Assembly: GCA_964247055.1 (NCBI GenBank)
Contig: OZ176056.1
Span: forward strand, 6,944,001 to 7,008,000
DNA: 64,000 nucleotides
Direction: 5' to 3'
Source: Paragordius varius
Lineage: Eukaryota; Animalia; Nematomorpha
Shown: positions 20,536-61,868 of the stretch, piece after piece
Layout: each line of letters opens with the position of its first letter
How positions within the stretch are numbered: position 1 is the stretch's first letter
Translations under genes and position numbers: made by a program
Notes under the pieces: generated by a model
Databases searched by the model: none
Told to the model about the DNA's origin: nothing
The model's input: the letters and a program-made list of their open reading frames with translations, nothing else

Positions 20536-22222
20536 ATGTTAAAATCTGCAATCTTCTATCTAATTATTGTAATGGGACAAACATACAATAATGTCATTTC
20601 GATTAAGATATCAACAAATTTTATACGGGAACTAGGATTAATCGTAATTGCAGATAAGAGATCTTTACGGATGACTAACTTTGTTTTTTCACCACTCCTG
20701 ACGGCTATGTCATTGGGTGTTATCCATAAAGCTTCAAACTGCAGTTCATTTGCACAATACATTGTGAAAAAACCCAAAATTAATCCAATACTAAATGCTA
20801 AATTATTAAACGATCTATACATAAAAAAGGAAGTTACCGCTGAATATAGTGAGGGTTTTAAGAAAAATGTGATAAGTAAATATGGAGGATCATTGATATC
20901 AATTTGTCCTCCCGCACCTGAGAAGAAAGTATATGAATTTATAAACTATCGTACGTCATTCTATACAGAGGTTAATAGTATTACTTACGTTCCCCCTAAC
21001 TTCCAAGCTTTGATGCTTAACTCCTTATTTATAACGAGTGACTGGAAAAAACCTATACAATCCAAGTTATTCTATTGTATTATTTTTTATTTTGATCAAC
21101 TCATATATAGCCAATACCATATTTAAATAAATTATTTTTAGAAAAAAAATCCAACTTTTTTCCAAAGCTTACGGCCAAAATTTTCTAACCACTCTGCACA
21201 AAATGCTAAATTTTGAAATTTTTAATATTCTTATTCTCTAACCCCGTTTGCAATAACTCCCATGAATAATAAATTTATAAATTTTGATCTTAATGGGATT
21301 CACTATAAATTTGTTGATTGTGATTACCTTAACCCACCTGCCTTATAATGTGGATATTTTTACAGTTATGTGAGAAGTTTTGTGTCAGTACATAGTATTA
21401 TTTCCAATTTTAAAATTTTACGTTTCAATTGTCATTAAAATAGGGGATAGTATTGTATACAATACTATATGTACAAAAGTAATCAAAAAGCCTCTAAATT
21501 CCCCTTGCCCCCAAATAAACTTAAATAAATGCTTAGGTCATCCGAATTATGACTACTTTCTACAAACATATAAAATATCAAAATGGTTAAAGTGTATTTT
21601 AAATAATACTTTAATAATAATAAACTGTAAAATATTAATATAAAATTTCAAAGTATTTTACCCATAGAATAATGTAATAATTGTATAGTTAGCGGGGTGC
21701 TCGACTTTAATCAATAATAATTTATTATTTTATCTAAAACATGAACGGGTGTATGGTAAACAGTAAGTAGTGATAGGATGACTATTGTGTTATATTGAAT
21801 AACTTAGTCTTTTTTAAAACTTTTTTATGTAAACGCAAGATATAAATAAATATCCTGCCATATATCCAATATATTAATTCTAGAAATATTTTCCATGTTT
21901 TTTACGGTCTGCGAAAGTGGGTGGGAGTACCATTTTTACTGGATGAAAACCGACCAGCCCGTATTTACAATTCTTCAGGCCTTCAAGCAACACTTATTAG
22001 TTTAGATTTTATGGCTGACATGAGTTTAATAATTATATATCCGCATGAACACGAAACTAGGTTTCGAGGCAATGCTAACGTATCTTTTTTGGATGAACTA
22101 GCAAAGTTACCCAATGAAACACAAAACATTAAGTTTGCCATGCCTCACGTGATACAAGAATCAAATCTTTCGCTTGATCAGCTATTTCGATTTGAGAGGA
22201 ATTGTCAAAAGTTTAATATTTT

Positions 22223-22282
<60 letters not shown>

Positions 22283-23179
22283 CATTCATTTATTAATAGC
22301 TTTGGACAGATATGATGTTACAATAATTAGAGCGTCGGGCTCGACTAATCTGGTTATGAGAATAACAAGATTTTCTGAAACTTGAAAATTTTATTATCAA
22401 TAGCACTGTGCATAGAAATGTCATAGCCTTCAATCCTAAATAAAATTTAGTTTTTGCAATTAGAGAATCTAAATTGTATAAGTTTGCTTACAGGACTAAA
22501 TTAGGTTATACAAACTAATCAAGTTAATGCAATCCATAATAGTAAATTATCTTTGGGTTTTTTGACGATACAAAATGTATATTGCCATGCAACAAAATAT
22601 CATGTTACTAGGATATGCCATTTATATCTTTATTCACCCTCGAAAATTCAAATTCACCCTAAAACATTTAAATTCACCTTGGACATTTTTCACTCTAAAA
22701 TAAATTATTTGTTGTTAAATATTAAAAATTACCTATATTATATGTTTTTAAAAAATGTAATTACGTTTTAAATTAAAATAATACTGAAAATATAATAAAT
22801 TACGCCATAAAGATATATTTCATATCTATGATAAGATATAATACGAAAAACATGATTTATATTTCGGGTGAATGTGAATCGTTCAAGGGTCATTTTGAAG
22901 TGTAAATGGTATATCAATAACCTAAATTTCGTTTTTTTATTTTTTAGCAGCTTTCTAACAAAAGCTTTGAAAGGAAATCATGCTTTATCATTGAAATTAT
23001 GGCAGCAACACATTAAAATAAATATTACTGAAAGCGGATTAAATGCGATTAATGTACAATCAAATCCCAAATATTCGCCTTTTTCCAACGGCATAATACT
23101 TAAAAGACCATTTGATTACATGGTCGTTTTGAAAAAGACAGGACATATAATATACTTTGGCAAATTCGTTCAGCCTTAA
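20536..23179 (+). CDS. Serpin-fold secreted protein, type A1 (~361 aa, 3 exons), predicted non-inhibitory
   Basis: Exons 20536-21065, 21884-22210 and 22951-23179 (or 22948), joined by phase-2 GT-AG introns in one open frame. Serpin motifs NFVFSPL, MLNSLFITSDWKKP, FH..VGVPFL, MSLIIIYP, FAMPHVIQESNL and HIKINITESG...RPFDYMV...TGHIIYFGKFVQP. Signal-like N-terminus. Confidence 0.85.
22226..22278. repeat. (TA)n microsatellite
   Basis: About 26 TA units just inside intron 2 of serpin A1; absent in A2. Confidence 0.95.
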
Positions 23180-23581: not shown

Positions 23582-23600
23582 CAGTGGCGGAACAATAAAT

Positions 23601-23632
<32 letters not shown>

Positions 23633-25060: not shown

Positions 25061-25074
25061 ATATAAATTATTTT

Positions 25075-26247: not shown

Positions 26248-29200
26248 ATGTTAAATTATGCAATCTTCTATCTAATTTTTTTATTGGGACATACATACAA
26301 TAATGTCATTTCCATTAAGATATCAAAGAATTTTATACGGGAACTAGGATTAATTACGATTGCAGATTATAGCTCTTTAAAGACGACTAACTTTGTTTTT
26401 TCACCACTCCTGACGGCTATATCATTGGGTGTTTTCCATAAAGCTTCAAACTGCACTTCATTTGCTTATCAATACATTGTGCAAAAACCCAAAATTAATC
26501 CAATACTAAATGCTAAATTATTAAACGATCTATACATAAAAAAGGAAGTTACCGCTGAATATAGTGAGGGTTTTAAGAAAAATGTGATAAGTAAATATGG
26601 AGGAGCATTAATATCAATTATTCCTACCACACCTAAGATGGAAGTAGAGGAATTTATAAACTATCGTACGTCATTCTATACAGACGTTAATAGTATTACT
26701 TACATTCCACCTAACTTCCAAGCTTTAATGCTTAATTCCTTATATATAACGAGTCATTGGAAAAAACCTATAAAATCCAAGTTTTTCTATTGCATATTAT
26801 TTGTTTTATTTATTAAGTCATATATAGCCAATACCATATTAAAATTAATTATTTTTAAAAAATACAAACTTTTATCCAAAGCTTACGGCGGAATTTCATT
26901 TTCTAAAACCACTCTGTACAGAATGCTAAATTATGAAATTTTTAATATTTTTCTCTCTATCCCCGTTTTTATACTCTATAAAGTGGTTTCCAATACCTCC
27001 CATAAATTTTTATTTTTGATGCGAATAGGATTTATTATAAAATATAATTATATTTATATCATATTTGTTAAATGTGATTACGTCCCATATTTTATATGAG
27101 ATGTTTTGTGTCAATACATAATATTCGATTAAATTTTGCGTTTCAATTGATATCGAAATAGGGAATAATTTGGTACTACAATACTATTTTATGAAAGTAA
27201 ACAAAGAACATAACCATAAACGCCTAAATAAAAATAAGATGCATGACTGCACTATGACTACTTTTACAAATATATAAAATATCAAAATTGGTTAAAATGT
27301 ATTTAATAACACTAGTCGACAAATTTGGACATTTTTAAGCACCACCACTCAAACATTTTAAATTATGACTAATTTCAGTGTTTTAAAACCGAATTTGAAA
27401 AAATTTTTGATCCCGCCAATCAGAATTTTGAAATTTTATAGGTTTTTCAATTTCTCAAAAACAAGAGAAAATCGAGAAAAAATTAAATATAACTTTATAA
27501 TAAAATGTTATTATATTATAAATTTAATATCATTTAATAAAGCGTTTTAAACTCTATCTTTTGAATATAAATATGTCATTTAAATATCAGAGAGAAAAAA
27601 ATAGTACAGACTTAAACGTCAAAATTTAGTCTTTTTTTTTCAAGTGAATTTTTAACACATATAAATTTTTTTTAACAAAATACTAAAAAAGGCATTATAT
27701 GGTTTAAACCTTCGGCTTTCAGATAGGCTATATTTTTTTTGTTAGATTTCGTTCTTTCGAGTACTTATTAGACTTTTTCTCTTGAGTTGGTTCTTATAAA
27801 AAATCCTTTATTTATACCTAGTGGATATACCTTATTTTTTTGAAATTATTGGTTGTTTTGTATTTTGAATTTCAGATAGATGTTGTGTAGCCACTTTTAG
27901 TAGAATTTACTGTTATGGGGTTGGACCATTTGTATTTACCTAATTTATATTTAATTTAATTGTAGAATTTATCTAACTTTATTCTGTAAATTGGTTAATT
28001 GGACATGTCAATTTGCCAGATTTTGCTTGCAAGTCTCTCTTATCGGACTTTACGATTACTTATTGTTATCTTTGCCATATCTGGCATAATTATAGGATCG
28101 CTTGGGGGATATGCAGAGCGTGTGCAGCCGCCCATATCTATCACACTATACATAAGCCTCTTTTAAATTTTTAATACTTTGGCTCTTAGCTTGTTTAGTA
28201 TCTCATTTAATGCCTAGAATTTGTTATCCATGCATGGAATATTACTTGTATCGACTTGCTTGTTTGAATTTTTAAACATATGTACACGAGGAATGATTGT
28301 TATTTTTGAATTAAATACAAATTTAAAAAGTAAATTTTGGAAAAATCCTATTGGTGGCCTCAATTTTCTTTTTTGTTTTGGCCTTTCCATGCCATTAGGT
28401 ATCAGAAAATGCAAAAATAATGGGATGGTGCAAAACCTTGTTGACTAGTGTAATACTTTACATATATTAGAATGAACTGTAAAAATATAATAGTAAATTT
28501 AAATATCCAAAGTATTGACCAATAAAATATTGTAATACTTGCATAGCTAGCTGGGTGCTCGACTTTAATCAGAAAATAATTTTTTAATTTATCTAAAAAT
28601 TGGGTATGAACACTAATTTATAGTGATTTGATGATAGTGATATATCGAATAACATAATGTTATATTTAAAAATATTTTCATGTGAACTCACGATATAAAT
28701 AAATATCATGCCATATATCTAATATATTAATTCTAGAAATATGTTCCATGTTTTTTACGGTGTGCGAAAGTCGGTGGGTCTACCGTTTTTACTGGATGAA
28801 AATCGACCAGCTCGTATTTACAATTCTTCAGGCCTTCAAGCAACACTTATTAGTTTAGATTTTATTGCTGACATGAGTTTACTAATTATATATCCGTATG
28901 AACACGAATCTATGTTTCAAAGCAATTCTAACGTATCTTTTTTGGATGAACTAGCAAAGTTACCCAATGAAACACAAAACATTAAGTTTGCCATGCCTCA
29001 CGTGATACAAGAATCAAATCTTTCGCTTGATCAGCTATTTCGATTTGAGAGAAATTGTCAAAAGTTTGATATTTGTATATCAATAGTATTTATTTTAGTA
29101 CTGAAGATATGATGTTACAATCAGTAGAGCGCCTGACTCGCCTAATCTGGTTATGAGAATAACAAAATTTTCTTTTATTATTATTAACAGCTATGGGCAG

Positions 29201-29936
29201 TGGGGTGTCATCAAAGCCTTTAAATTCCCTAAATATAATTTAGTTTTTGCAATTAGAGAATCTATATTGTAAGTTGTTAATGCTATCTTTAATAAGTTTC
29301 TTTGGATCGTTTGACGATTATATAAAATTATACCGCTGTGCATGTTATTCTGATAATATGCCATTTATATTTCAATTACCCTTGAACATTAAAATTCATT
29401 CTTGAACAACAATTCAAATTCATTCAAATCCTCCTTGAACCTCAAATTCACCCTAAAACAAATTATGTGTTTTTTAAAGTTAAAAACTACCTTAATTTTT
29501 AATATTTTTTTAAAAAAATGAAATTTTGTATACTGAAAAAAATACACTATGCGAAAAGATATGTTTCATAAAGATGAGTCAACCCGATTTAAAAGTTGTT
29601 TTTTGGCTAAATGTGGATTGTTCAATGGTCAATTTGAATTGTAAATGTATATCATTAACCTAAATTTTTCATTTTAATATAATTTTTAGCAGCTCTCTAA
29701 CAAAAGTTTTGAAGGGAAATCATGCGTTATCATTGGATTTATGGCAGCACCACATTAAAATAAATATTACTGATAGCGGAATAAACGCCAACAATCTACC
29801 AACAAAGCCCAAATATTCGCCTTTTTCCAATGGTATAATTCTCAATAGACCATTTGAATACATGGTCGTTCTGAAAAATACAGGACATATCATATACTTT
29901 GGCAAATTTGTTCAGCCTCAAGAAAACAACAAATAA
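26248..29936 (+). CDS. Serpin-fold secreted protein, type A2 (~367 aa, 3 exons), tandem paralog of A1
   Basis: Exons 26248-26780, 28737-29063 and 29693-29936 (or 29690), with the same phase-2 introns and motifs as A1 and an open frame throughout. Confidence 0.85.
27310..28450. mobile_element. Non-autonomous CACTA-ended element (CMC superfamily, Chapaev3-like), in intron 1 of A2
   Basis: TIRs CACTAGTCGACAA / CACTAGTCAACAA with a 3-bp TSD TAA. Absent from the A1 intron. A near-identical inverted copy lies at 40279-41407. Confidence 0.8.
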
Positions 29937-30205: not shown

Positions 30206-33200
30206 TAAGGTGACCAGATTTTTTGAAGGAAAAAGCGGGAAAATTTGAGAAGGGGGGGGGTCATTGGGGGGTACAACCAAAAATTTTTATACAAAAAACT
30301 TATTGTAATATTTATTTATTTTTAACATAACATTATGAATATAAAAAAATTTGTACCTTATTCAATAAATTTACATGTGCACGAACAAAGGGTGAAGTGA
30401 TTGTAATAATCTAGAAAAAAATAATAAAGACGAAATCATCACAGAGTGCGCCGGGTGATGCAAGAAGCGGCACAAAAAATATTTTTAACAATTTAGCGAA
30501 TAATCTTGATCAAAACATTATTGGCAGATACACAACGCTATTCAAACAGCTACTGATTTATTACCCCTGGATGTTGAAAATGTAGCTGGTAAAATGCTTG
30601 GATATTCTAAAACTCATTGGTTAGCTCTTTTGCCAGCTATTGAGAAAATTTTAAAAATGCATGATCGCCTAGAATCCTATTTTTTATCACAGGAAAAATG
30701 TCTAAAATTCCAAGTCAAGAGAGGTTAAAAATAATTTTATACCATTTAATCGCATTATTATAAATCTTCCAGAAAAACAAGGCTCAATGAATAGCCAGGA
30801 TAAAATGTTTTATACAAACAGAAACGATTATTTGGAAGACAAGACGGTGCAATTCAATGACACTTTTTTCTGAAGTATCATATTTAAATTGTAGAATTTG
30901 CATTATCTTTACCTGAATCACTGCTATTGAAGGCGTTTTTCCACAGTAAATTAAGTAAGGACACGGAATCAAATTTAAATGTTGAATAAAAGCCATTTTA
31001 TGTGTTCAAATATAATTTGACAGGAAGACTTATAATATTTAAGTAATTTTGTTTATTTTTTAACACAAAAACTTTAAAGAAAATATTTTATTCTTTGGTA
31101 TATTTTTTGTTTGAGTGAATGCGTTTTAGCAGATTGTCATCATTTTTAAAATATTGTAGAAGTCTTCACAAGAATTTGTCAAATTATATTTAAAAGATAA
31201 AACGGCCTTTAAAGTTTCAACATTTAAATTTGATTTTTCCGATGTCCACACTTGATTTACTGTGAAAAAACGCGCTCACAGCGTGGTTCCTGGTAAAGAT
31301 AGTGCGAATTCCACAATTTTTAAAATATTATTGTATGTAATAAAGTTGGCTTCAAAATAATGAAATATTTCCAACCATTTCTTTTCTACTGTATATTTTT
31401 CTTTTGTCCATAATTTAAGTTTTTTATTATATATTTTAACTAATGATTCTTCAGAAAAAAAATCATTTTCTGAAAGATTACTTTTTGAGAATTTTTGGGA
31501 ACAGATATAATCAAATGATTTTTGAACATCGCACCAATTAAATTCTGTTTTTATTTTATCCAATAAAATGATCAATTTCATTGAATTTCACCGTTCAGTC
31601 TTCCAAATAATCATTACAGTTTGTATAAAACATTTTTATATGGTACAGGATATCTTGGCGATGTATTAAGCCTTGTTTTTCTTTATTTATTATATTGCGG
31701 ATGGTTAATGGTATAAAATTATTTTCTAACCGTTCTTGACATTGGAATTTTAGGTTACTAACTTCATTGGCTACTTCGATTGCCGAAATTTTGTCACCTT
31801 CTATAAATTTAAACCATATTTTTGAAAAATCACTTTCAAAAAAGTTTTTTAAAGTTGTAGGACATTTGTCCTGTGATAAAAAAATGATTTTAAAGGATCA
31901 TTTTTCGATAGCTGGCATAAAAGCTAACCAACGAGTTTTACGATATCCAAGCATTTTTTTATATTGAACTTCTGCATTTCAGAATTCTTTAAGCGTTTCA
32001 ACACGTACTGTTTATATATAAAAATAGGAATATAATTTTACAACTACATTTTCCACATCTAGGGGTAACAAATCAGCAGCTGTTTGAATAGCGTTGTGTA
32101 TTTTATGCCACACCCGACGCTAATAATGTTTTGATAAGATTATCTGTAAATTTATGAAAAATATATTTTGTTCCCTTCGTATTGGTATTGTTAGCGTAAT
32201 ATGCGATAATTTTGTCTTTTAAATTTTTTTCTAGAATATGCATTATTGAAGTAAATATTATTTCGGAATTTTCACCGGGTAGAGAAATTAAATCTAAAAT
32301 TTTAATTTTTACTCCGGTTTCTGAGTCCAAATATCTTATTAAAGTGGGAAATAATTTTGTTTCATGGTGATTTGATGCATCAGAGTATAGGGATAAAAAA
32401 TTAATTTTCAGCAAATCTTTTTGCATTTCAGAAAATGCATGTGGCGAAAGGACATTGCACACAATGGCTTCAGCCTTTGTACGGGCACATGAAAATTTTT
32501 ATGGAATAACGTGCGAATAACATGTGAGGTACAGTCCATATATCTAAAGGAATGATTGTGATTAACGGCGTGAAAAGATAACTTGCCTTCAGCTAGTGCT
32601 AAATACTTTTCTTCCTCTTCAAAAGCGGTTTTTCGATAAAAATCGCTCATTTTGTAAGATGATGCCGCCATATCCAAACATTTTTTGTTTTGTGTTTCCA
32701 TATGCTTTGTAATATCATGCTTGCCGCCATGTTCTAGGGTGAATTTCTCCTCGCATAAAAAACAACAAATGATTCATTCTTCGTTTTGATAAAAGGAAAT
32801 TCTTTCAGTATTAACGTTGATATTACAACCTCTTTTTGTGCTCATATTTATAAACTACTATTGGTATAATAAATATTATATTACCTTAATTTTCTGGAAT
32901 AAACGTGTAAGGTACCGATTTGTGGTATCAATTTGTCTTTTAAGCTACCGATTTGTGGTATTAACTTGGCTTTTTGATAATGATGACAGTAGTAGTAGGA
33001 AGCAAAGTGTATAATCATATGATATAAATTCGAAAAAAATAAATATTTTTAATTTAAAAATAAAAAATTTTAATTTAAAATTGAATAGATTTTAAAGATA
33101 TTAAATGATAAAAAATTTAAACGGATAAAAAAATTTATTTGTATTGAAAAAAAAATTTTTTAGATAATCGTGAAAAAGCGGGACATTTAAAAACGTAGCG

Positions 33201-33644: not shown

Positions 33645-33647
<3 letters not shown>

Positions 33648-33706
<59 letters not shown>
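33648..33706. repeat. (TA)n microsatellite
   Basis: About 29 TA units. Confidence 0.95.
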
Positions 33707-33708
<2 letters not shown>

Positions 33709-34010: not shown

Positions 34011-37000
34011 CCCAAAAATAGTTAAACACATTATATAAAAACCATAAATTATTAAATGTATTAAAAGCATTTTATATAGTTAATTATTTTATTTCACCAT
34101 TATTTTGCTAATTAAAAAAATTGCCTAATATAATTGGCGAGGATCAATATTTTTTTATGTAATATTTCTTGAAAATTTTATTTTAAAATATGCGCCTAAA
34201 AGCTATAGAATGCATATTTTTCCTCTAACCCAATGAAATAGGTGCCTTATGTGTTATTTATGTAAATTTTTCTCCCTCAGAAAGCTACCACAAAAGTCGA
34301 TGGAGTATATAAAATTTGATTAGGCCTTAACAATGCAGTAATGCCTGTGAAATTATATTTTTAATTGAATAAAAACCAAATTTTTGAACAAATTATTTTG
34401 TAATGACAACTTTAGGAAATTATAGTTTAATTTTAATAAAACAAGTGTTTTGCCCATATAGTTTACACAAGCCGCTCTAGTATGTTAAAGTAAAACATGT
34501 TAATCATGCTTGATATTCGAGATGAAAAAAATAATATAATTTTTAGAACAATTTATAGAATATAGTAAAATTTTATTTTATTTCTCAAAAAAATCTTTAT
34601 AGTAGTATTTTTAACTGAAAATGCGCTGATAAAAAGAACAAAACACCACCGCTGCGCGGCGCCTATTATAGCAAAGATATTCTCGTCTTATATCTTAATT
34701 ACACAATCATATGAAATTTACATGAAGAGAGCTTATGTATATTAAAACCATAACTTTAATTTTCATAGTGTAACTTTTAGTAACAAAAGAAATTCCTAAA
34801 TATACAATGGTCAATGCTAAAATTACACAGTCTCTAAAATTAATAAATGAAATATTTAAATACTTTAGCTATTTATAAGAAATTTTAAATAAATGATAGA
34901 GAATTTAAGTTTTAGGGTTAATTGACTCATTTTTAAAAAATTTTGATCTAAATATATTGGGAAAAAACCACAGAATGCATTTTTTAAATTCAATACCTTA
35001 AAAATAAATTGTAATTAATTACTCTTTATTTTTTTAATTGTAAAAACTAACCCGAATGTTCATAAAAAATCATTTTAAAATAAAATTATTATTATTCTCT
35101 AGGATATAAACCGTAACATTATGCCAACTTTATCAAAATTAAATTATATATTTAACAACAAATTTTTTTTTCAAATGAGTGTCTAAAGTTTTTTGACGAT
35201 TTTATCTATGATACTAACAATATTTAATTAATGGTATTCTTTATTTTTGTGGTAATGAGGCAACACGTCCAAGCTACAAATCAATTTCGTAATATATTTT
35301 TCAATGATTGTGATGAGTAAACCCTTGTTTTATCTTTTATATAATTAATAATTATACTTTTGGGGTAGTTTTAGTACCCAGAGCCATTTAAAATTAAATA
35401 CTTAAAAAATATTAAGAGTATTGGGCTAAAATAAAAAATATGCTTTAAAAAGATTAAAAAGTGCAAATTCGTAATATTCTGATAATTATTGATTTGTAAA
35501 TCAATAATTATTGATTTACAAATCACTGGTTATTTAGTTTTTTGGAGAAATCCGAATTTGTGCCTCAAGCAGTTAAAAATTTGATAAATAAAAGGAATGT
35601 AACAGGAAAACAGGATTTGTAATTATATTACGACATTTTTAAAACAGTACTTTATTGATAAGCTCGGCCTGGGGTAGAAAATTACCCTCAGATGTAATCG
35701 ACTACAAAAAAGGAAAGTAATGAATTGTTAAAAATATAAGGGTACAAACGTAATATTAGTGGTAGAAACTGCATTAAAACAAATACACATAAATTTTATT
35801 ATGAAATAAATCAGTAAAATAGAGTGTGGGCTTGTGCAAACGGCACCAAACCCTGTTTTTATTATAGATTAATACTAATATTAAAATTTTGGGGAAAATG
35901 GAATCTCTTGGATGCAATTTTTTTATCGAAGATAATTTATGCTCAAACATATTGAATCATATATTATCATTTTATATCAAAATCAGAAACACCTGACTGC
36001 TAAAACAATTTTTTGGGTGTAATTGACAATGACCTATATTTCGGATTTTAAAAGCGGATGATGTGATCTTTTTAGCAATTAATTGATTTGTGCTATATCA
36101 TTTGGGTGGTATTTTAAAATTTTGGCTGTCTATATATATCGTTTTTTTAAAATAACTTTTAAATATGAGTATTATTAAGTAATTTTAGGCAAGGTTATAT
36201 TTTGATTGTATATTCCTTATATTATGGCAGCAAAAATCTTGTATTTTATAATACTCAGGATAAAATAATTCGATTGCAGTGATACTCCCTAAAATAGGGC
36301 GCCGTCAAGGATATCAGAAATATTGTATGTAGAAAAGGTACAATATTTTAATGTGTTTAAATACGCTTTCTAGCATGCCTCCATCTACGATCGATATTTT
36401 AATAATTCGAGATATACTAATTTACAGTTTTCTTATCTCAAGCGAATCCAGGGGAATTAAAAATCCAGGCATAAAAACAATCGGGTGGATTAGTGAATCT
36501 ACCTTTTATCAAAATTGATTTTAAGTCTTCGACCACAAAAGATAAGGAGTATCGATTGCTAGATTTTTTCCGCGCGAGCTCTTAAATCCGGTAAATAATT
36601 ATATTCATAACCAGATCCCAATGGTGTTACGGAAAACCTAACTGTGTGATCGATGAAATTTGCCAATTTCTTGTAGTTTTCCCTTTTCTTTGGCAAACAG
36701 CAAATCTAATTTACTAAATATCAGAAAATATATGCGTATATATATGAGCCAAACAACAGTAAAAGGGAGTTTTTATGATTGTATTAATATTAAGTAAACT
36801 TAAAATTATCGAATTTGGGGTCTTTGCACACTCGTCCAAAAAAACATTCAGATCTCGGATGTTAATCTATCATATAAACTTAACTAAAACGTTACAAAAT
36901 AATAGATTGTACGATATCGGTGACAAAATATAGGAATAACATTTTATACATTAAATAATGGAGTTATCTAGTATAAATAATGGCAATATATTCATAATTG

Positions 37001-37492
37001 GTAGTACTAAAGTATAATCCGTGCATACTCTGTTAATGTATTTCCCGAAAAATCAAAATGTTTCGAACCAAAACGTAAAAAAAATTTAATAAAATTATTT
37101 CAGTCCTCATAATAAATTTTTGTTTCCCTTAAACTTGTGTTTAATATCAATATGTGTATAACTGAAAATTTGAATCACACAGTTTGGAATTTTTTCCTTA
37201 TAAAAAAGGTTAGAGACTTTCAACAAATTAATGACTAATTAATATTTGAGCCTCAGAGCTTGCAGTGATGATGTGAAAAATCGTTTTTTATACTTTGGCA
37301 TCGCACACAAAGTGTCTGACTGCTACCTGTATACACTATCCACCATGCTTTCACAACTTAAATGAGGAGGTTTTAAAGCAAATATTTTTTAGTTTTAAAG
37401 CATTGGATTAGTGATTTATTATTGGCCTTAGAATTGTGATAAAAACATCGATCTATCTGAGTGTGATAATGAAAAAGTATATATATCAATAA

Positions 37493-38616
37493 CACTGGAC
37501 AACAAATTTTTCTGCCACTCGAGTTTTTTAAATTTTCTGATATTTAGTATCATTTTAACAGTAAATCTGAAATAAAAAATATAACTCGTTGGAAGAATTT
37601 TGTATAATTTGATTTTTTTGATTATGCGCCCTCTTTATCAAAATTTTACTAAAAAATATTTTTCTTTGAAAATATACAAGTAATGCCCATTTGTAATATA
37701 TCATTCGAAAGAGTAATAAAAACTCTATAAAATGTATACTAATATGTATTACATCGACAGTTAATATTGGACACAAAGGGCGACAAACGCGCGAAGCGAG
37801 AGCATTTTTTTTAATTATTATACTTTTAAAACTAATGGATGAAAATAGCTCAAACTTTGTTTAGATGGTGATGAATGTCCAAAAAAAATAACACAAGAAA
37901 GTTTTTTTGAATAAAACATTTTTTTATTGCTTTTATATCACTCAAAACAACCATTTTTAAGTTTTTAGTATTTTAAAAATTACCATCTATCAATATTAAT
38001 TTATTTTCTTTATAAGGCTGATAATTTGGAAATTTTAAAGATAAAAACAAAGTTTAAGGTATTTTTGATCTTTTATAGCCAATATGTATAAAATTTACAG
38101 TTATAACTATGCATTTTAATATCCACTAGGTAAAATATTTATGATAATAATAATTTTTATTAAAAAAGCAAACCAAAAGCTTTTTCAAACATTTTTTTAA
38201 AATTAAATATTAATATAACCCTAATAATTATATTAAAATAATTTATATGATTTTCAAATTAGTTTGTCTGTGAAAATTCTTGACTTATTTAAGGATTGAA
38301 AATTTCGACCATTTAAATCCAAATAATTTTTACATCCGATGGATTTAAATGACTTACTACCATTTAAAAGATGCAGTTTTTTGCGCTCTTTCGAATGATA
38401 TAAAATACATGGCTTCTTATCTAAAACTTTTAATTTTCGAAATTTCGAGTTTAATGTTAAATCGGGGCCAAAAATTATCGATAAACTCTAATATAAAAAA
38501 ATTCTTTCATGCTAGACCAATTTTCTTTTCAGATATACTAATTATGTACTTTAATGAAATAAATTTTAAATTTACAAGAATGGCAGTTAAAAAAAGTTAA
38601 AATTTGTTGTCTAGTG
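37493..38616. mobile_element. Non-autonomous CACT(G/A)-ended element, second family (Chapaev3-like)
   Basis: TIRs CACTGGACAACAAATTT / CACTAGACAACAAATTT; TSD TAA (37490-37492, 38617-38619). Confidence 0.8.
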
Positions 38617-41407: not shown

Positions 41408-42035
41408 TTATAGATATAACTAAAGTTGTAAAAGAAAAAAATAATTAATATAATTAATTAATGGATTATGGGCAAAATTAAAATGTTTGAAAATCGATTT
41501 ACCAAATATTGATGATAAAACAATAAAAATCATAATTTAACGCTAAAATTAACACTTGGATATATTCATTTCAATACTTCGATTTAAATTAGGGTAGTTT
41601 ACCCGCTTGTTAAAATTAAATATTTTAAAAAATATGGAATAAATTGAAACCATGGCAAAGGTTCCACTTTAATAATATTAATGAACCGAAATATTAAAAA
41701 AAATATTCAAAATTACTTGATATCACTTATTGAGGGGTAAAACCCACAGGTAACAATTTAGTCAAAATGACTGTGTTAAATATAAAAATAATGCAAAATA
41801 TAAGACTATTTCTGTTTATAAATATTAAATGTAATTTTAATAAAAAAATAAATTAATCTGGCTTAGAATTGATATTTTGCAAAAATGATGTGAATAAATG
41901 GCGTCCAAGTATTTTTAAGCTAAATTTATTTAAATATTTTGGCTTATTATAATTAATATTAGGATAGAAGCATAAATTTAAATTGAAACCGTTTCTATCA
42001 GTAGTTTTTTAAAAATATCAAAATATTGTCTAAAG

Positions 42036-46600: not shown

Positions 46601-48190
46601 CGGTTTGTGATCAGTACGTAGTTCAAACTTCTTCCCCGTAATGAACGTTCTAAATTTTTCAAAAGCGAAAAGTATGGCTTGTGATTCCTTTTCTATCACT
46701 GAATAATTTTCTTCGGGTTTAGACCACTTTCTAGATGCGTAGGCAATGGGTTTATATATGCCCTCCTGCGTGTTCTGTAGTAACACTGCTCCGTACCCTT
46801 TATTCGAGGCGTCTGTTTCGATTATTATAGGTAACCCAGGGTTGAACGGAGTTAGTTTAACAGTATGACATATTATTTTACTGGCTCTGTTAAAATAATC
46901 GTGGTTTTTGGTCCATATCCAGGGTTTTTTATAACTGCTTAGGTCGTGAAGTATAGCCAAACTTCCATGCAATTTCGGGAGGAATCGTGTGTGACAATTT
47001 ATTAAGCCTAAGGAGGACTTGAGTGTTGTTTTGTCACTGGGTCTTGGGAAGTCTTATATGGCTTTAACTTATCGGCAGCTGGTGATATGCCTTGATATAA
47101 CATATTCCAAATAGCTTACAGACGGTTGAAAAAGTTTTAGTTTCCTTTTACTTAATTTTAAACCAGAATCGTCTAAACGCTTAAATACCCTTTCTAAGTT
47201 TCTTTTATGTTCGTTTCGGTTTTTTCCTGTTATTAAAATATCGTCTAAATATACAGCTGTTCCTGGGCATTCAAATAAAATCTTATCAATTATTCTTTGA
47301 ATAATGCAGGGGGCGCTTGTTAGGCCAAAGGGAAGCCTTTTATATATAAAATACCCTTGGGGTGTGATTGTTAATAACTTTTGATTTTCTTAATCTATTG
47401 GCAATTGCAGATATGCGTCTTTCAAATCGAATACCGAAAATGATTCTCCTAATCCTATTTTGGAAACTAAATCGTCAAATGTCGGTATATTATGACTGTC
47501 ATCTACTAGATGTGGATTTATTGTAACACGATAATCTGCACATAACCTTAGAGAACCATTCGAATTTGTTATACAAACAATAGGGGTGGCCCAGGTTAAT
47601 TTCTCAGTCGTAGGGTCTAATGGTTTGATTATGTCCGCTTCTAAAAGTCTCTTAATTTCAGAGTTGACTTTTTCTTTTAACGGTATCGGGATGCGGTGAC
47701 ACTTAAAAATTTTTGGTTTTGTATTGTTTTTTTAAAAAAAGTTTGATAGGGGTTCCCGTGAAACACCCTAACTTTTCACAAAAAAGTGAATTAAATTTAT
47801 TAACAAGTGAATTTTCCTCAAATGTATTAATATTAAAACATTTACAACAATTTCTCAACTGTTTTATGGCATTCGGGAATTCTTGTAGCCAATCCCAACC
47901 AAGGATTGCTGGGGCCTTCTTTCCGCTTACAACCATACACGCCAGAGATTTTGTTTCACCATCGCATTGTACCGTGACCATACAACTACCCTTGGAATTA
48001 ATTCTTTGTCCACCATAGCTATACAAATCTGGGCCTGTTTGTTGCAACTCGGGCTTACCAATATTTTCCCACGCTTGACAATCGATTATAGATACGCTTG
48101 AACCTGTGTCTATAATCATGTGTATTGGCTTGCCATTTATTATTATTGCTATCTTGGGGGTGGCTCCAGATTCAACATACTGAACGTTGC

Positions 48191-51100
48191 TGTAAGGTTA
48201 TAATATTCTATTTTGTTAACACACTCAATTCATGTTGCATCAGTTATTTTGTATTTGAATATTATATAAATATTTCGTGTTAAAGCTTATCTGTTGTTAA
48301 GAATAACGATTGTGTAACGTCTACACAAATAAGGCATGCACACAAAAAAAGAATTGTGATATAATAGCCAGTCACTTTTTTATTTTGATATACCATATTG
48401 CTATACGTGAATAAATCAACTTTTCATTTGGTGCCGTGTTAGCTTTCAATGAGCCAAGCGTTGGACATTTCAAAACTGATTTTAGAGCCTTTTAAGGAAC
48501 CGATGAATTTTACTCAATATATACGTCACATCAGGAGAGTCTTAAATTCCAAAAATATCGAATCCAATGACACCACAATGAAACGCACCTTTCTCGCTTT
48601 CGGCGGTATTCAAGTAATAATGAAAATCGAAACGCTAGCATTCCCAACACTCATAGATGACATGGAATGGGAGGAAATTGCAACCTTGGCCACTCAGATA
48701 TATTCACCAATCAGCTGCCTATGGTTAAATCGAGTTTAATTCTACCGATTAAAAAAAATGCCAGATGAATCAGTCATGGAGTTCCTGGAACGTCTGAAAG
48801 CAAAATGTGAAGCCGGGAAATTTGAAGGGGATATTCAGTCAAAATTACGCGATTTATTCCTGGTAGGTCTTGAAAATCCCAGAGTCGAACGCGAAATTCA
48901 ATCCAAATATCCAGATGGCAAAAAGGACGGGGGTCCGGTAACCCTTCAAGCGATTGTAGACATCGCTTATTCCTATGAATTAGAAGATAAAAAGGTTTAC
49001 AACATCAGAGATAATAATGATATGAACAATAATAATACCAGTGAACTTCCTCCAAGTATCCAACCAGTTGTTAATGATAATAATACAATCAATCAAATAA
49101 CCCGAAAGCTATGTAGTAATTGTGGGTATCGACATGGTTCCGCCACCTGTCCGGCAAAAGGAAAACGGTGTTTCAATTGCGACAAATGGAATCATTTCAG
49201 CACAGTATGCAAGGCAACGTTCCGACGGCCGTCAATCCGCACCATGACTAGCCCGAACAACACCCCCCGGATTTAAGTATTAATAAATAATATACCAACA
49301 ACGTTTATCTACGATACGGGCGCCGAGGTATCCGTTATTGGCAAGCGCATTTGGGTAAATCATGGTCGACCTCGTTTGCTACCAGCTCCAAATTTGCGAA
49401 CCTACAATGTTGGCCCGATAGAAGTACTCGGAAAATCGATGATTTCAGTGATTTTGAACGAAGAGGAGAAGTGCCTGCCCTGCGTGGGGACGCAAACTAA
49501 CCCGCCAGCCGTGTTCGGGATGAATTGGATGCGGGCGTTTCGGTTAGAATTCCCAAAAGATGTTTTTTCAGTTTTACATACGCAAGCACCTAATAATAAA
49601 ATGGTATTTGATTAATTTGACAAATTGTTTTCAGACGAGTTAGGTACTTTCAAGGGGCCTCCAATAAAATTATTTATCGACCCCGAGGCCAAACCTAAAG
49701 TTTTTCCTTGTCGTAGGGTACCTTTAACTCTAAAACCTTTAGTAGAAAATGAAATTGATAGATTAGTTAAACTCAAAATACTCCGACCTATCGATCCGAC
49801 CCAAACCCCAATAACATGGGCCTCTCCCACAGTAAATATAATTAAAGGAAATGGAGAAATTAGATGTGCCGATTTCCGAATTAGTATCAACCGTTATTTA
49901 GCAAAGGATTTTCATCTGATACCTACTTTTGACGAGTTGGCCACCAAAGTGGCAAATGGGATAATTTTTTCCACTTTAGACCTGAAAGATGCTTACTTAC
50001 AATTTCCGATAGACCGGGCGTCACAGACGCTAGTAACCATCACAACTCACAAAGGGTTTTATGCTTACCAACGACTTCCATTCGGATTAACTTCAGCACC
50101 TATGATCTTTCAAAGATGCATGGACAATCTTTTAAAGGACATACCTGGTATTTGTGTGTACCTGGATGATGTCTTAATTTCCGGAGCTACCAGGGAGGAA
50201 CATGATCAAAGATTAAGGGAAGTATTTAGAAGGTTACAAGAGGCGGGATTACGATTGCGCCGAGACAAATTGCAAATTGGTATCTCACGAGTCAAATAAT
50301 GGGGTACGTGATTTCTGACCAAGGTATTGAGCCGTCCAATGAAAAATTAGAGGCCATTAAAAATTGTCCGACACCTACAAACAAAACTGAGCTACGTTCG
50401 TTCTTAGGTTTAATAAATTTTCATGAGTGGTTTATACCAAACTGTCACCCACACCTAGCAACCTTACACAAGTTAAGTGGAAAGAATACACCTTGGCGGT
50501 GGACCCCGGCAGATGATAGTGAATTCGCGAAAGCAAAAAGCTTGCTAACCAGGCCCCCCGCTTTAATGCCATTTAACGACCGTTTTCCCTTGTTGATCGA
50601 AACAGATGCTTCCAACAAGGGGTTTGGGGCAATACTGTTTCATAAGACCCCACAGGGGAAACGCCCAATTTTTTACGCGTCACGAACTTGTTCAATAGCA
50701 GAAAAGGGTTATTCCACGATCGAAAAAGAGGCCAAGGCCATAGTGTTTGCCCTAGAAAAATTTAAATACTTTATATATGGAAGACCGTTCGAGATATATA
50801 CAGATCATAAACCGCTGGTGTCACTATTTGGGCGGAAGAGAGACATCAACAATATTAATAAGAGCAAACTGCTCAGGTGGATATCGAATACCATCGGGTA
50901 CGAGTATGAAATATTTTACAAGAAAGGGGAACAAAACTTAGCCGACGCGTTGTCGAGACTTCCCATAGAGCATAGCCAACCAGATGATGAAGATGACGCG
51001 GCCACCAAGCAGGTACGATTTTTGGCTCTAAAAATGCTGGATGTAAATAAGAAAGTGGTCGAAGAGGCAACGATCACTGACCAACGGTTATCAAAAGTTA

Positions 51101-52690
51101 AAAATGCTCTCAGGACAAACAGTTGGATCGACGAAGATCTGAAACCTTTTTTAAAACGTAAAAACGACTTGGAGTGTTGTTATAATCTGTTATACCTGAA
51201 TGATCGCTTAGTGATACCACAAGCGATGCAGGAAGCGATATTGAAACTTCTGCATGCGGGACACAGCGGGCTAAAAACAATGAAAGCCCAAGCCCGGTGT
51301 TCGGTATTTTGGCCCGAATTAGACACCGATCTAGCGAATTATGTGGAAAGGTGGGAGGCTTGCCAAACCTATCGACCTAACGCACCTGAAAATCTTCCCT
51401 ATCGATGGAATTTTAACACTTTGACATGGGAAAGGTTACATATAGATGTTGCTGGACCGGTGGATGGATATTATTGGTTAGTGACTATCGATAGCGCCTC
51501 ACGGTGGGTAGAGATAGATCCTCTTAAATCAATAACAAGTCAAAGCGTTTTAAATTGCCTGGAAAAACACATCGCACGATTTGGTTTTCCCCGCCAAATT
51601 GTGACCGATAATGCCACGTATTTTACTTCAAGAGAATTTACGACTCTCCTAAATCAGATGCATATAAAGCACGTCTGTGCAGCACCCTATCACCCCAAAA
51701 CAAACGGTCTAGTAGAGAGAGTAATAAAGACATTAAAAACGAAATACGCCGCTACTTAGACCCAACAAATGCATGCATATGAAGCTATAAACACGGTCCT
51801 TTATTCGTATCGAACTAGCATGCATTCTTCGCTAAAAGAAACGCCTTCCGCCATATTCCTGAAACGGCGTGTACACAATCCTATCTCTTGGGTAAAAACA
51901 ACCCCTGTCGAATTTATAGAGCACGAAAATGAACCGAGACGATAATTCCAACAAGACGATCCTGTCTACATTAAAAATGAAATGGCCTTAGGCTGGCGGC
52001 CAGGTCACATTCTGGAGAGAAGGGGGTTACTCTCGTATGAAGTGCAAGATGAGGAAGGGATTCGAAAACGTAAACATGCAGATCAGTTACGAAGTAGGTC
52101 AGGAGGGAATTCATACGAAACTAATCCCTTAATAGAGCATAAATATCCCAGCGTCGAAAGTGTCCCGGGTCATGTCGAGGGAGCCCACTCCGAACAAACC
52201 TTCCATCCCACCTCGGAATCTCAAATAGTCCATGCCCCAACTCCTGCTAACTCATTAGCCCCAGAATCGCTGACGCCTGTAGAGGCCACACCCGACGTGG
52301 TAAAGGGGGTTTCTGACCTACCCGAGCGTAGATATCCGCTAAGAAGACGGCAGCCTCCCGATCGTTTAATCTTATAGGTATAATGTACGAACACGACAGC
52401 CCCCGTGGTTAACTTAGGGGGAAAGTAATGTAAGGTTATAATATTCTATTTTGTTAACACACTCAATTCATGTTGCATCAGTTATTTTGTATTTGAATAT
52501 TATATATATATTTCGTGTTAAAGCTTATCTGTTGTTGAGAATAACGATTGTGTAACGTCTACGCAAATAAGGCCACACAAAAAAAGAACTTGTGATATAA
52601 TAGCCAGTCACTTTTTTATTTTGGTTCTTTTTATCGTTCAACTCTATTTTAATATACCATATTGCTATACGTGAATAAATCAACTTTTCA
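48191..52690 (+). mobile_element. Ty3/Gypsy (Mag-like) LTR retrotransposon, inner element (4.5 kb)
   Basis: TG...CA LTRs 48191-48426 and 52429-52690; TSD GTTGC (48186-48190, 52691-52695). PBS TGGTGCCGTG matches the first 10 nt of a tRNA-His primer site; PPT AGGGGGAAAG at ~52416. Confidence 0.96.
48449..52377 (+). pseudogene. gag-pol of the inner retrotransposon, disrupted
   Basis: Gag 48449-49276 (frameshift near 48735; CSNCGYRHGSATC and CFNCDKWNHFSTVC), PR YDTG after an in-frame TAA, RT 49625-50299 (YLDD), RNase H-integrase 50299-51759, and a tail to 52377. Confidence 0.9.
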
Positions 52691-54673
52691 GTTGCTAATC
52701 CTTTTCTTCTTACAGCACGGTTGGAAGTGATTCCAGCCTTGGCACTTAAAACATTGTTTGCCCCAAGCTGGGCATCTGCCCGGTGCATGACCTAACCCGC
52801 AGAATCGACACATGTTTTGGTATTTCCGAACTGTAGTCTGCAAAATCTGGCCATCTATTGTTATTAGTTGATGTGCTTTTTCATAGTTGGTCTACCACTT
52901 GTTTGAGCGTTACAGCTTCGTTTCCCCACATTGCATCGGGGAATCTAGCGAATAGATCTAGTTCTATTTTTTCCACTCCCAGGCCTGCAATGAACACGTC
53001 GCGCATTTTTTCATCGATGTCAAGCTTGAAGTTGCATTTTGCGGCTTCGGTTTTGACTCGTAACAGAGATTCCGTAAATGTTTTATTTTCTTTCCGACGG
53101 AGTTTTACGAAATTGAATCTGGCCTGGAATATGTTTGTCCTATTCGATTCGTAGATTTTCCTGCCGGCTTCAATGATGTCCGGCCAGGAGGTATTATCAA
53201 GTGAATTTGGGAAAAGGAATTGTTCGAATTTCTTTGTGACCAACATTCCTGCGTAAGCGAGGAATAACGTCTTGCAATTGTTATCGTTTGCCGTCATTTG
53301 CAGCTAACATTCGCTGAATGTACGAAACGTATCGGTCAAAATTTTCCTTTTCATCAAAACTTTCCAGAGAAATTTTTGCCAGGTTCATTATCGCGCCAAT
53401 GATGGAAGTATAACACAGAATAATAGAAGTAAAGATATATTAAACAGAAATTTATTAAAATATTAGAAATCAAAACATGTGTGTGTTATATTATAATACA
53501 GCAATTATATACTAGTTATTTTGCTTGAAGCTACAATTAACATTAACTAGGTGTATCACAAAGAGTTATAATTGTTTACAAATATATAGGCGCGTCTGTG
53601 TCTGCGACAGTAGAATCTAACTTAACGATTGGTGAAACTGAAATATGTTGGTATACTATATCCAGATAACTTCGATTTAAAAGATGGCATTAACCATTTT
53701 TCCGCTCGACCTGTTAAGGGTGCATCGTGCTTTTTATAGTCAATGTTGATGCGATTTAAAACGCTCAGTTGAGTAGATAATCCAAGACCTGCATTAAATG
53801 GGACCTTTTTCAAGATATTATTAAGTTCTTTGCAGCCGGCAGGTAGTAGTCCTTTTATTGTATTGGGACAAGTTGAAAAAAATTGAACCAACCCAAGACC
53901 CAGTTGTAAACCCGCAGGTGAGAAAACGTAAACCATATAGGTGTTATTTAAAACACTATTCAATGATACTTGGTTAAAATGGCCTTTATATTTAATTATA
54001 AAATTTTATATTGGAGTAGGTATTATTCTAATTTAATGTGTAAATATATTACAATACGGATCGATATAAATTTTATTATTACTTGCTCTTGCAATAAATA
54101 GAATTTAGGTTTTTTCTTTGAAGCATCCATCCCGTGTAAAAGATATAAAATGTGTGAAAAAAATTTAAAAATATTAAGAGTTTCATGGCTTTTTGAAAAA
54201 TAAAAAGAAGTATATGCGATTATTTTGGCAACTTATGTAATATCCAATTATATGATGTTATTTGGTTTTTGACGTGTTTGTATACATAGCTAAGGGTTTG
54301 GCCAATATTTAATTAGCATTTTTTATAACTTTATACGTTAATTAATCATTGACGCATTTAACACAGCCTACTAAAAAGCCAAAGTACCATGTTAAAGTAA
54401 GTAAAACTTATGTTCTTATGCTTACGTCCTTATGTACGTCCTTTTTTACTTATGCTTACACTTTTGAGTAAATATCACATACCATTTACACTTCAAATTC
54501 CCTTTAACAATAAGGGGTTAAGTAAACTTTGTGTCAAAAATTTGAAGCAACTTCACTCATATATATTATTTGTAAAATATCTTTGACTTTATTTCCTCCA
54601 ATTTACAGAATTAAATTCACAATATTTTTAAAGTTATACCAAATTGCACACACTTATGATCAATGATTTATAC

Positions 54674-55560: not shown

Positions 55561-55569
55561 GTTAGGTCT

Positions 55570-58804: not shown

Positions 58805-59204
58805 TTATAAAGTCACTTAAAATATTATAAAAATACTTTTTCTATTTTTTTTTCAGAATTTTAATATAAAGATTCGTTTTTTACCAATTAATTTTAATAA
58901 ATTTTGGTTTATTAAGAATATGTAATTATTGTGTGTAGAAAAGGTGTTATATTTTATGTGTTTATATACGCTTTCTACCCTCAAACTACGATCGAGTTAT
59001 TTTAAGAATGCAAAACACCTACCGATTTGGCTATTCAAATTTTATTTAAAAATTAATATGAACAAAACAAGAAATATATTTAGCATAAAGCATGCTTTTG
59101 TAGATATATCAATCCACATTTTTCTTATCTCAAGCGAATTCAGAAATATTTATTCCGGGCATAAAATCAACATAAGTTTTTTTTAATTGGGTTTATTATT
59201 TGAT

Positions 59205-61868
59205 TTAATTCGAGAATTTCATTTTCAAAGGCGAGTCGTTGTGGGGGGTTGTTGTTGTATCATAAGCGGGTGGATTAGCAAATCGCCCTTTTATCAAAAT
59301 CGATTTTAAGTCTTCGACCACAAAGAAAAGATACGGTGTATCGATGGCTAGATTTACTTTTCCCGGGCGAGCTATTAAATCCGGTGAATAATTATATTCA
59401 TCACCAGATCCCAATGGTGTTACGGAAAACCTAACTGTGTGATCAATGTGCGAAATTTTGCCTATTTCTTGTGGTTTCCCTTCTTCTTTGGCAAACAGCA
59501 AATCTAATTTACTAAATATCAAATAATATTATAAATATTTAATGAGAACAACAGTTTAAACCGTTTATGATTATTATAATTGAATAAAACTAATTATAAA
59601 ATTTTGGGTTTTGATGTCAACAAATTTTGGTAAAAAAGGATACAACTTTTAAAATGTTTAGATTCAGGATTTAGGTATTATAAAGTAGCAATATTTTCAT
59701 TACCCGAAATAAATTTTAATCCGTGCATACTATGTTAATGTTTTATCCAAAAAAAACAAAATTTAACTGTTAAAAATGCTTTTGATTTTTAATCAAAATT
59801 ACTTCCCATTTCATCATAAAGCTTTGTTGACCCTAAATATTTCCTAGTTACTCCATCCACCTGTAGTTTAATGAATTGTTTAAAAATAATTATAATTTTT
59901 CATCCTAAATTTTAGTGTTACTGTGTAATCATAAATAGAATATCATATAAACTTGTGTTTAATTTCGAAATAAAATGGGCATAAATGCAAGTTCTAAATT
60001 ATACAGTTTAAAATTTCCCCCTTATATTTAAAGATTAGGGACTTTGAATCAACTAATTAATATTGGAGCCTGCCAGAGCTTGCAGTGATGAGTGAAAAGG
60101 AATCGTTTTTGTACTCCGGCATAGCACACAAAGTGTTTGACTGCTAAGCCTGTATCATTGCCACCATGCCTTCCATTTTTTTAAAACAGTTTAAATATAA
60201 AAATTAATATTTAAAACCGTTATATTTTTAAAAAATTTATCTAAAACTTAAAGGGACATAAATGAGACACCACATACAAATAAACCTATTTTACGTTAAT
60301 TATAAGATATTATTTCGGGGCTTAGCTAATATACAAATACGTTTTATTAATATTTTATGAAAGAATGTGGCCATACTCAAAATCTGATTTTTCAAGACAA
60401 GTTATTTGCATCTATTCACTTAATAAAATGTATGTGATTTTAAAGCTGTATAATTTCTTTAATAACCAATTAATAAATATATACTTTTTATGGCACGTGA
60501 GTTCCTTGGAAAAAAGATCCATCATATTAAAATTTGTTTGAAGGTCCATAAAAGGCACACGTACACTTCCTGTATACTGTTTAAATTTGCGTTTTTTTAT
60601 TTGGTGAATAACATTAGGATATGCCTTAAGTGTTGTTTCAAGACGATTAGTGTCATAATCATTCGGTATTAAATAGATCATTTTATATTTTTTTCGATAT
60701 GGGATTATGACGACTTTGGATTTGAGTTCTCTATAATCACCTAATTGATATTTTATTCCCTTCCCAGATAACATTGCAACTGGAACAGGAATCTTTCCAT
60801 TGAAAAAAAAGGTTAGCAGCACTCTACATTGATTTTATAAATATGTATTTTGAGGCAGCATATAAGGAAAATATTCAATTAAAATTTAATTACACCCTAT
60901 ATAACTAAATTTAGTTTTAACGTTCTGTAATTTTTTTTCTTTTTTATGTCTTATAAATGAAATAAAATCTGAGGTATTTATTAGATATATAAGTATTAAA
61001 AAATAAACGCTGTCTGATATATGACGTCAGAATTACAAAGATATAAAAATAAATGGAAAGCTATTTGTAGAAAAGCGTCACGCGATAGATAATTGTTGTG
61101 TTTTTTTAATTCAATTAAATTACCGAAAATATGCTACCCAAATCACCTGTTAAAATTATTTAACCAAGAGCTCATGAAAAACAGACCACCTCCAACCGTA
61201 TATATACTGCTAGTGTTAATGATTCCTTTAGCCGGTTCAGAAAAGCGTTTAAAATGTCCTCCAAACTCTCGAGTATAGTATTCATTTAGTAAATCGATCA
61301 AACTGAAATATGTTGGTGTTCTATATCCAGATAAATACGATCTAAAAGATGGCAATAACCATTTTTCCGCGCGACCTGTTAAGGGTGCATCGTGCTTTTT
61401 AGGGTCAATGTTGATGCGATTTAAAACGCTCAGTTGAGTAGGTAATCCAAGACCTGCATTATATGGGACCTTTTTCAAGATATTATTAAGTTCTTTGCAG
61501 CCGGATGCAGGTAGTAGTCCTTTTATTGTATTGGGACAAGTTGAAAGAAATTGAACCAACCCAAGACCCAGTTGTAAACCCGCAGGTGAGAAAACGTAAT
61601 CCACATCGGTGTTATTTAAAACACTATTTAATGATACTTGATTGGTTAGAATAGCCTTTATATTTATTTATAAAAAAATTTTATTGCAAAATATTTAGAT
61701 TCGTATTATTTTAATTTAATGAAAATATATCACAATACGAATTCATATATAGAAAATTATACTTACTTGCTCTCGCAATAAATCGTATTTTCGTTTTTTC
61801 TTTGAATCATCCATCCCATGTGAAAGATATAAAATGTGAAAAAATGTTAGAATTATTAAAAGTTTCAT
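59205..61868 (-). CDS. Serpin-fold secreted protein, type B (418 aa, 4 exons), predicted non-inhibitory
   Basis: Exons 61868-61767 (MKLLIILTFFHILYLSHG signal, GTAAGT donor), 61655-61147, 60823-60485 and 59511-59205 give one open frame. Motifs YVFSPAG, LFFMSSW, VPVAML, VVIIPY..MIYLIP, VRVPFM and HTVRFSVTPLG...TPYLFFV...ILIKGRFANP. Confidence 0.88.

Follow-up and report, generated by a model that had tools for sequence, protein, structure and literature searches.

A convergent cluster of two divergent, predicted secreted and apparently non-inhibitory serpin subfamilies in the hairworm Paragordius varius

We analyzed a stretch of 64,000 nucleotides (nt) from the hairworm Paragordius varius (Nematomorpha; assembly GCA_964247055.1, contig OZ176056.1, positions 6,944,001 to 7,008,000), referred to below as the window (G000:C7:6944001-7008000 in our notation), and scanned the whole 110.5-Mb, 44-contig assembly. 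The window carries three intact spliced serpin genes, which we named A1, A2 and B, and one pseudogene of the B type. A1 and A2 are located on the plus strand and the pseudogene and B on the minus strand, in agreement with the convergent layout proposed in the original prediction for this DNA. The extent given there, 20536 to 61868 (window numbering, as for all positions below without a contig name), runs from the ATG of A1 to the ATG of B, and all four genes were found at the coordinates first assigned to them, with GT-AG junctions and exons free of internal stops in the three intact ones.

Exon borders were set from the sequence and from comparisons of A1 with A2 and of B with its paralogues, and were then checked by script. 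A1 is made up of three exons encoding 362 amino acids (aa; 363 codons with the stop), with introns of 818 and 737 nt. Exon 1 (20536-21065, plus strand) encodes the signal-like N-terminus and the helix B motif FVFSP, ends past the Trp of strand 3A (s3A) and has a GT donor in phase 2; exon 2 (21884-22210) encodes serpin core (Pfam positions ~190-279), and exon 3 (22948-23179) encodes strand 5A (s5A), the hinge, the reactive loop and the C-terminal strands up to the stop. A2 also has three exons (26248-26780, 28737-29063 and 29690-29936, plus strand), which encode 368 aa (369 codons with the stop) and are separated by introns of 1956 and 626 nt. Comparison of the two genes shows that ~1.1 kb of A2 intron 1 (27313-28451) is missing from A1. 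B is a four-exon gene on the minus strand encoding 418 aa (419 codons with the stop), with introns of 111, 323 and 973 nt. Its exon 1 (61767-61868) encodes a signal-like peptide and a basic stretch and is followed by the donor GTAAGT in phase 0; exon 2 (61147-61655) contains the helix B motif and an invariant Cys-x12-Cys loop and ends past the s3A Trp; exon 3 (60485-60823) encodes serpin core; and exon 4 (59205-59511) encodes the hinge, the reactive loop, the C-terminal strands, a Thr-rich tail and the stop. The two introns that interrupt the serpin core are in phase 2 and occupy matching sites in A and B, one 6-7 residues past the s3A Trp and the other just past a conserved Cys-Gln/His. By inspection the N-termini are signal-like, as had been claimed: they are short and basic, followed by a hydrophobic core with small residues at its end (SHG in B, VMG in A1). 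The A1, A2 and B proteins are thus predicted to enter the secretory pathway.

We next consider the assignment to the serpin superfamily. The Pfam search with PF00079 was made exon by exon, with a curated cut-off of 27 bits. B exon 3 passed it with 36.1 bits (32.8 bits in the genome scan), and B exon 4 scored 13.1 bits; the exon matches in B fall at collinear profile positions. The matches of the A exons are collinear as well and sum to ~33-38 bits. In this exon-level search the first core exons of A and B gave no Pfam Serpin match. When family profiles were compared with solved structures (PDB), 89 matches at E<=1 were obtained for A exon 1, the strongest at 1.7e-5, and 60 of 60 among the matches listed were serpins; A exon 3 reached E 1.3e-4 with PAI-1 at the top, and B exon 4 reached E 1.8e-3. 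The B exon 2 profile, run with HMMER against 1.84 billion proteins, returned four matches, three of which are bona fide serpins matched over full length at E 1.7e-5 to 7.7e-4 and scoring 115-281 bits with Pfam Serpin in their own right. B exon 2 and A exon 1 were aligned to each other by hhalign with 86.7% probability. The intron positions and phases are common to A, B and a canonical serpin pair on contig C4, and chains of paralogues connect A with canonical serpins. The serpin motif order noted earlier was also found across the exons of A1, A2, B and their paralogues: FSP (helix B), N..Y.KG.W (s3A), core PY/P, H.. (s5A), the hinge Gly, PF (strand 1C, s1C) and F.G...P (C-terminus), with Pro-Tyr in B in place of the canonical serpin Pro-Phe. 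Two results count against the assignment: the A exons taken singly are all below the Pfam cut-off (13.6-16.3 bits for exon 2, 19.5-22.1 bits for exon 3), and the B exon 2 profile found nothing significant among solved structures (best E 0.28). Exon by exon, then, serpin identity is supported, and any single exon supports it weakly; we consider the membership of A1, A2 and B in the superfamily secure because Pfam, the profile searches against structures and proteins, hhalign, the common intron positions and the paralogue chains can be combined. The top match of the B exon 2 profile search, P0001 (979 aa, repetitive), was set aside as a chance similarity multiplied by its repeats, since it has no serpin domain; it carries a Cys-loop-like motif, C-P-x-K-[IL]-[KR]-G-L-[LV]-P-x-P-G-C, 11 times, and the match is limited to this 19-residue motif. 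AlphaFold2 prediction of B exon 2 alone from a 7-sequence alignment had a mean predicted local distance difference test (pLDDT) score of 40.2, which is too low to allow a fold search.

In the hinge of the reactive loop A and B depart from inhibitors. Inhibitory serpins follow a rule of Glu at P17, Glu/Lys/Arg at P16, Gly at P15, Thr/Ser at P14 and Ala/Gly/Ser at P12-P9, and inhibition is abolished by a charged residue at P14 or by Pro at P12 or P10 (PMC2689274). The register in A and B was fixed by alignment to PAI-1 and, with no gaps, to canonical paralogues within this genome. On translation, the three P17-P9 strings quoted in the original prediction are exact: ESGLNAINV in A1 (23030-23056, plus strand), DSGINANNL in A2 (29772-29798, plus strand) and PLGSGDEYN in B (59391-59417, minus strand). 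Small residues occupy one, one and none of the four P12-P9 positions, respectively, so the proposed break with the inhibitory consensus stands; P15 Gly is the only position held in all three. The same departures are seen in the relatives of these genes. A-clade hinges on contig C6 read E-R-G-L-N-A-[DE]-Y-[YF], giving a clade motif of E/D-[RS]-G-[LIV]-N-[AG], and every member of the B clade has T-P-L-G-[STA]-G followed by Asp, Gln, Asn or Thr at P12. These motifs are conserved across paralogues only 35-47% identical overall. Elsewhere in the genome ~22 loci, among them the pair that is sister to the A clade, have retained hinges of the inhibitor type (e.g., ENGTVAAAAT, EKGTEAAAAS and EEGIVAASAT), and at least 12 intact genes in the two clades have non-canonical ones. 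By these sequence comparisons the hinge deviations are clade-wide, conserved and derived, and not alignment noise or decay, because they are conserved throughout each clade while the sister paralogues are canonical.

The PF00079 scan of the genome gave 87 exon-level matches, which correspond to roughly 40 serpin loci. On C6, A has four relatives at 44-47% identity, of which three are intact and one is a pseudogene; more distant is a pair on C4 (9.519 and 9.526 Mb, 35-36% identity). The intact B relative B2 lies just past the window end, head-to-head with B on the plus strand (C7:7011366-7014407 and slightly beyond), and four deeper B-clade paralogues of 35-47% identity are found at C7:2.73 and 2.76 Mb, C2:4.536 Mb and C4:9.964 Mb. 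The B clade has a conserved basic stretch past the signal peptide and, in the helix C/D region, an invariant C-P-N-x-I-K-G-L-L-P-x-x-G-C segment that forms the Cys-x12-Cys spacing. The tails of B and B2 are Thr/Pro-rich, and those of the deeper paralogues are acidic and Tyr-rich, e.g., DYYYYD or DYSLYDDD. A maximum-likelihood tree was built from a middle-exon alignment of 36 rows and 112 columns; the alignment is short and its branches are long, B is included twice (one row is labelled A2_window) and A2 is left out, and both the tree and the hinge census omit a few loci. In this tree the A clade is monophyletic (support 100/100) with the canonical-hinge C4 pair as its sister (96/86), and the B clade is monophyletic (93/97) with two odd-hinge singletons nearest to it. 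Both clades belong to a derived group of 27 (96/92) that excludes the canonical genes on C10, C3 and C5. A and B share 14-16% identity per exon, and in BLASTP comparison of A with B the middle and last exons were unalignable and the single match covered 22 residues at helix B, all of which bears out the description of two very divergent subfamilies. Compared with canonical serpins of their own genome, A and B are 10-33% identical per exon. When A exon 1 (a 283-aa open frame) was the query of a word-based protein search, no match was found; a canonical serpin from this genome, used as a control, had one match at 26% identity. The database therefore contains no close relatives even of the ordinary serpins of this genome, and missing relatives of A and B say little on lineage restriction.

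Around B and B2 we observed further copies of the B type: a fragment between the two genes on the minus strand (L069:320-1499, where L069 is C7:7008001-7016000) and a pseudogene with stops and a frameshift at 7.018 Mb (L070:2401-4226, where L070 is C7:7016001-7023000). A block at C2:11.020-11.032 Mb mirrors this layout, with a B-like pseudogene (minus strand), a fragment (minus strand) and an intact gene (plus strand). The tree groups B with the pseudogene of the C2 block, and B2 with the intact gene there (synonymous divergence, dS, 0.20). The matching block layout together with these pairings suggests that a segment was duplicated between the two contigs. Two more serpin types are repeated at C7:2.77-3.03 Mb with ~50-51 kb spacing, one in five copies and the other in at least four; the hinge of these types is N-G-T-E-G-A-S-V, with Val, Ile or Leu at the usual P17 Glu.

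The original prediction also held that the genes are under selection and that the family is expanding. A1 and A2 stem from tandem duplication of an entire gene with its introns. Their exons differ by 8.2% mismatch and 2 gap events, whereas in the non-exon parts the mismatch is 16.4% and the gap events number 85; applied to the exons, the latter rate predicts 49.7 gap events (P = 3e-19). The ratio of nonsynonymous to synonymous divergence (dN/dS), from Nei-Gojobori counts summed exon by exon, is 0.25 for B/B2 (dS 0.58) and 0.22-0.31 for four other pairs, the pairs spanning both clades; for A1/A2 it is 0.58. Between B and B2 an alignment survives in exons only. We concluded that coding constraint maintains these genes, strongly in B and more loosely in the young A1/A2 pair, because of the exon indel deficit, the dN/dS values and the exon-only B/B2 alignment. 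As for expansion, the genes are duplicated and the family counts ~40 loci, but the many dead copies in both clades indicate birth-and-death turnover instead of simple growth. The window contains part of a lineage-specific birth-and-death serpin expansion.

What these proteins do can be proposed from their sequences. We favor, with moderate confidence, the view that the A and B proteins are secreted serpin scaffolds that no longer trap proteases and that bind partners through an exposed loop and clade-specific additions. The hinge that is meant to slide into beta-sheet A would be hindered by its P12-P9 residues, which are polar, charged or bulky (in B, Pro also replaces the P17 Glu), so that suicide-substrate inhibition would be lost, and the stable scaffold would bind its partner via the fast-evolving exposed loop and the additions. 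In the B clade the latter would be the Cys-x12-Cys loop, the basic stretch and the tails, Thr-rich in B and B2 or acidic and Tyr-rich in the deeper paralogues. The classical inhibitory mechanism has probably been lost, and non-inhibitory is the best sequence-based reading. The earlier phrase "binders, decoys or effectors" is speculation, and so is a host-directed action with targets in the haemolymph of the insect host, plausible as it is. The most specific form of the idea, two serpin-derived families particular to this animal lineage that gave up trapping and serve in the parasitic stage as secreted effectors binding host haemolymph or immune factors, seems unlikely to us as a whole; the elements used for binding would then be a fixed TPLGxG or ExGLNA segment replacing the hinge, a disulfide-type Cys-x12-Cys loop, an exposed fast loop, and tails that may be glycosylatable or sulfotyrosine-like.

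Several observations speak against a loss of trapping and would fit proteins that are still suicide-substrate inhibitors with unorthodox hinges, aimed at proteases of the worm or of its host. Loop length is canonical: the distance from P17 to the s1C Pro is 27 residues in B, the same as in alpha-1-antitrypsin, and 26 residues in A1, where the aligned PAI-1 has one residue more. P15 Gly is invariant, and P14 is Ser/Thr/Ala in the B clade (Ser/Thr in B vs. Leu/Ile in A). By counting, P1 would be Arg in B, and A's nearest relatives have canonical hinges. The distal loop evolves fastest, with a ratio of nonsynonymous to synonymous differences per site (pN/pS) of ~1.2 vs. 0.2-0.6 for whole genes (29 substitutions, small counts); this fits a contact surface and equally fits the bait of an inhibitor, as inhibitory families are also hypervariable there. 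Against active inhibitors, however, are the P12-P9 residues themselves, AINV, ANNL and DEYN where Ala, Gly or Ser is required, the Asp/Glu-Tyr-Tyr/Phe at P11-P9 of the C6 A-clade paralogues, and the Pro at P17 with Asp/Gln/Asn/Thr at P12 throughout the B clade. The predicted P1 also differs between B and B2, being Pro in B2 as in A1/A2. We therefore hold continued inhibition to be rather unlikely.

Two other explanations were considered. The genes could be young functionless duplicates drifting to pseudogenes in a transposon-rich region, with the odd hinges a sign of decay. The dN/dS of A1/A2, weakly below 1 at a dS of 0.13 and as high as 0.89 in exon 1, weighs on this side, as do the several pseudogenes and fragments in both clades and a neighbourhood crowded with long terminal repeat (LTR) and hAT-like remnants. 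Yet the reading frames run uninterrupted through 362-418 codons, the shortage of exon indels and the low dN/dS of the five other pairs are those of constrained genes, the hinge motifs and the Cys loop stay invariant across paralogues 35-47% identical, and true pseudogenes within these clades illustrate how decay appears locally; drift appears quite improbable. Alternatively, the proteins may be non-inhibitory serpins with an internal role, such as ovalbumin-like egg storage, a part in the cuticle or egg-string matrix, or service as a chaperone or carrier, and not host effectors at all. The evidence for a non-inserting hinge applies equally to such a role, known non-inhibitory serpins mostly fill roles of this kind (PMC3394726, introduction), and nothing in our data points to the host. 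Repeated duplication, rapid loop change and variable tails would better fit a shifting interaction, which is a weak argument, and we give an internal role a small probability. The secreted, non-trapping scaffold with an exposed binding loop remains the reading we prefer.

Non-inhibitory serpins are well known and include ovalbumin, maspin, PEDF, HSP47 and the hormone-binding globulins. A and B resemble these in the common serpin core, the off-consensus hinge, the predicted signal peptide and the presumed binding in place of covalent trapping. They differ in that their sequences show no particular affinity to any one of these and carry hinge motifs of their own clades, and in that the B clade adds the Cys-x12-Cys loop and the Thr-rich or acidic Tyr-rich tails. 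Serpin expansions in parasites are equally familiar: Ixodes scapularis has 45 serpin genes, 41 of 43 predicted to be inhibitory (PMC2689274), in an expansion that is likewise lineage-specific, clustered and mostly secreted (predicted so in the hairworm). In contrast to that overwhelmingly inhibitory set, two whole clades here have non-canonical hinges. The scabies mite serpins SMSB3 and SMSB4 act on host immune factors that are not proteases, in a way that does not depend on the hinge mechanism (PMC3394726), but they have working hinges and inhibit chymotrypsin, unlike what the non-canonical hinges of A and B would predict. Closest at hand are the canonical C4 pair and the C10 and C3 genes, which share the three-exon core and its intron phases with A and B; the C4 pair and the A clade also have in common a Cys before the second intron and a C-terminal TGHI-YFG motif. 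The hinges of these canonical genes (EEGI[IV]AASAT or ENGTVAAAAT) are of the inhibitor type, unlike those of A and B. Because both serpins that do not inhibit and serpin expansions in parasites are well documented, the suggestion of an undescribed system was overstated: A and B are two new subfamilies, lineage-specific ones, of a known superfamily.

In a literature search we found no paper on serpins of Nematomorpha themselves; the one paper that mentions both concerns proteins of the cricket host. To our knowledge almost nothing is known of the molecules that hairworms release into their insect hosts. The ~40 serpin loci, at least a third of them in the clades with non-canonical hinges, make up a catalogue of candidates for secretome and host-interaction work. 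The natural series from canonical sister genes to the derived clades may also show how a serpin scaffold gets repurposed. On present evidence this is an ordinary finding, a divergent gene-family expansion within a known superfamily.

The B-type pseudogene is scattered over 36483-54178 on the minus strand with 74-85% nucleotide identity to B. Its recognizable parts are remnants of exon 1 (54083-54178), the 5' part of exon 2 (53601-53975), the frameshifted 3' part of exon 2 (44749-44885), a remnant of exon 3 with two stops (44008-44328) and a remnant of the last exon with frameshifts and stops (36483-36712). Exon 2 is interrupted by an insert of ~8.7 kb (44886-53600) whose break point matches B 61294/61300 and which consists of the remnants of two nested Ty3/gypsy-like LTR retrotransposons. 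The outer element has LTRs at 44962-45106 and 53482-53626 that are 95% alike, with pieces of pol on the minus strand; the LTRs of the inner element (48191-48335 and 52429-52573) are 98% alike, and its pol is on the plus strand. Retrotransposon insertion broke this fourth, B-type gene copy.

The rest of the window is full of LTR and hAT-like remnants. It had been claimed that every transposon open reading frame (ORF) here is broken, which holds for the retroelement pol genes, fragmented over several frames, but not for one ORF of 486 aa: this frame, encoding RNase H and integrase, is still open at 50299-51759 within the nested elements. An Rfam scan of the whole window found no matches. The two hAT-like frames that were tested, 31276-31581 and 32103-32462, had no Pfam match at E 0.01. 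By eye, hAT-type transposase-like ORFs were recognized at 3089-4660, 16631-16948 and 31276-32701, all on the minus strand. The GC content of the window is ~27%, and the nested elements stand out against this background as a GC-rich island of 35-42% at 44-54 kb.

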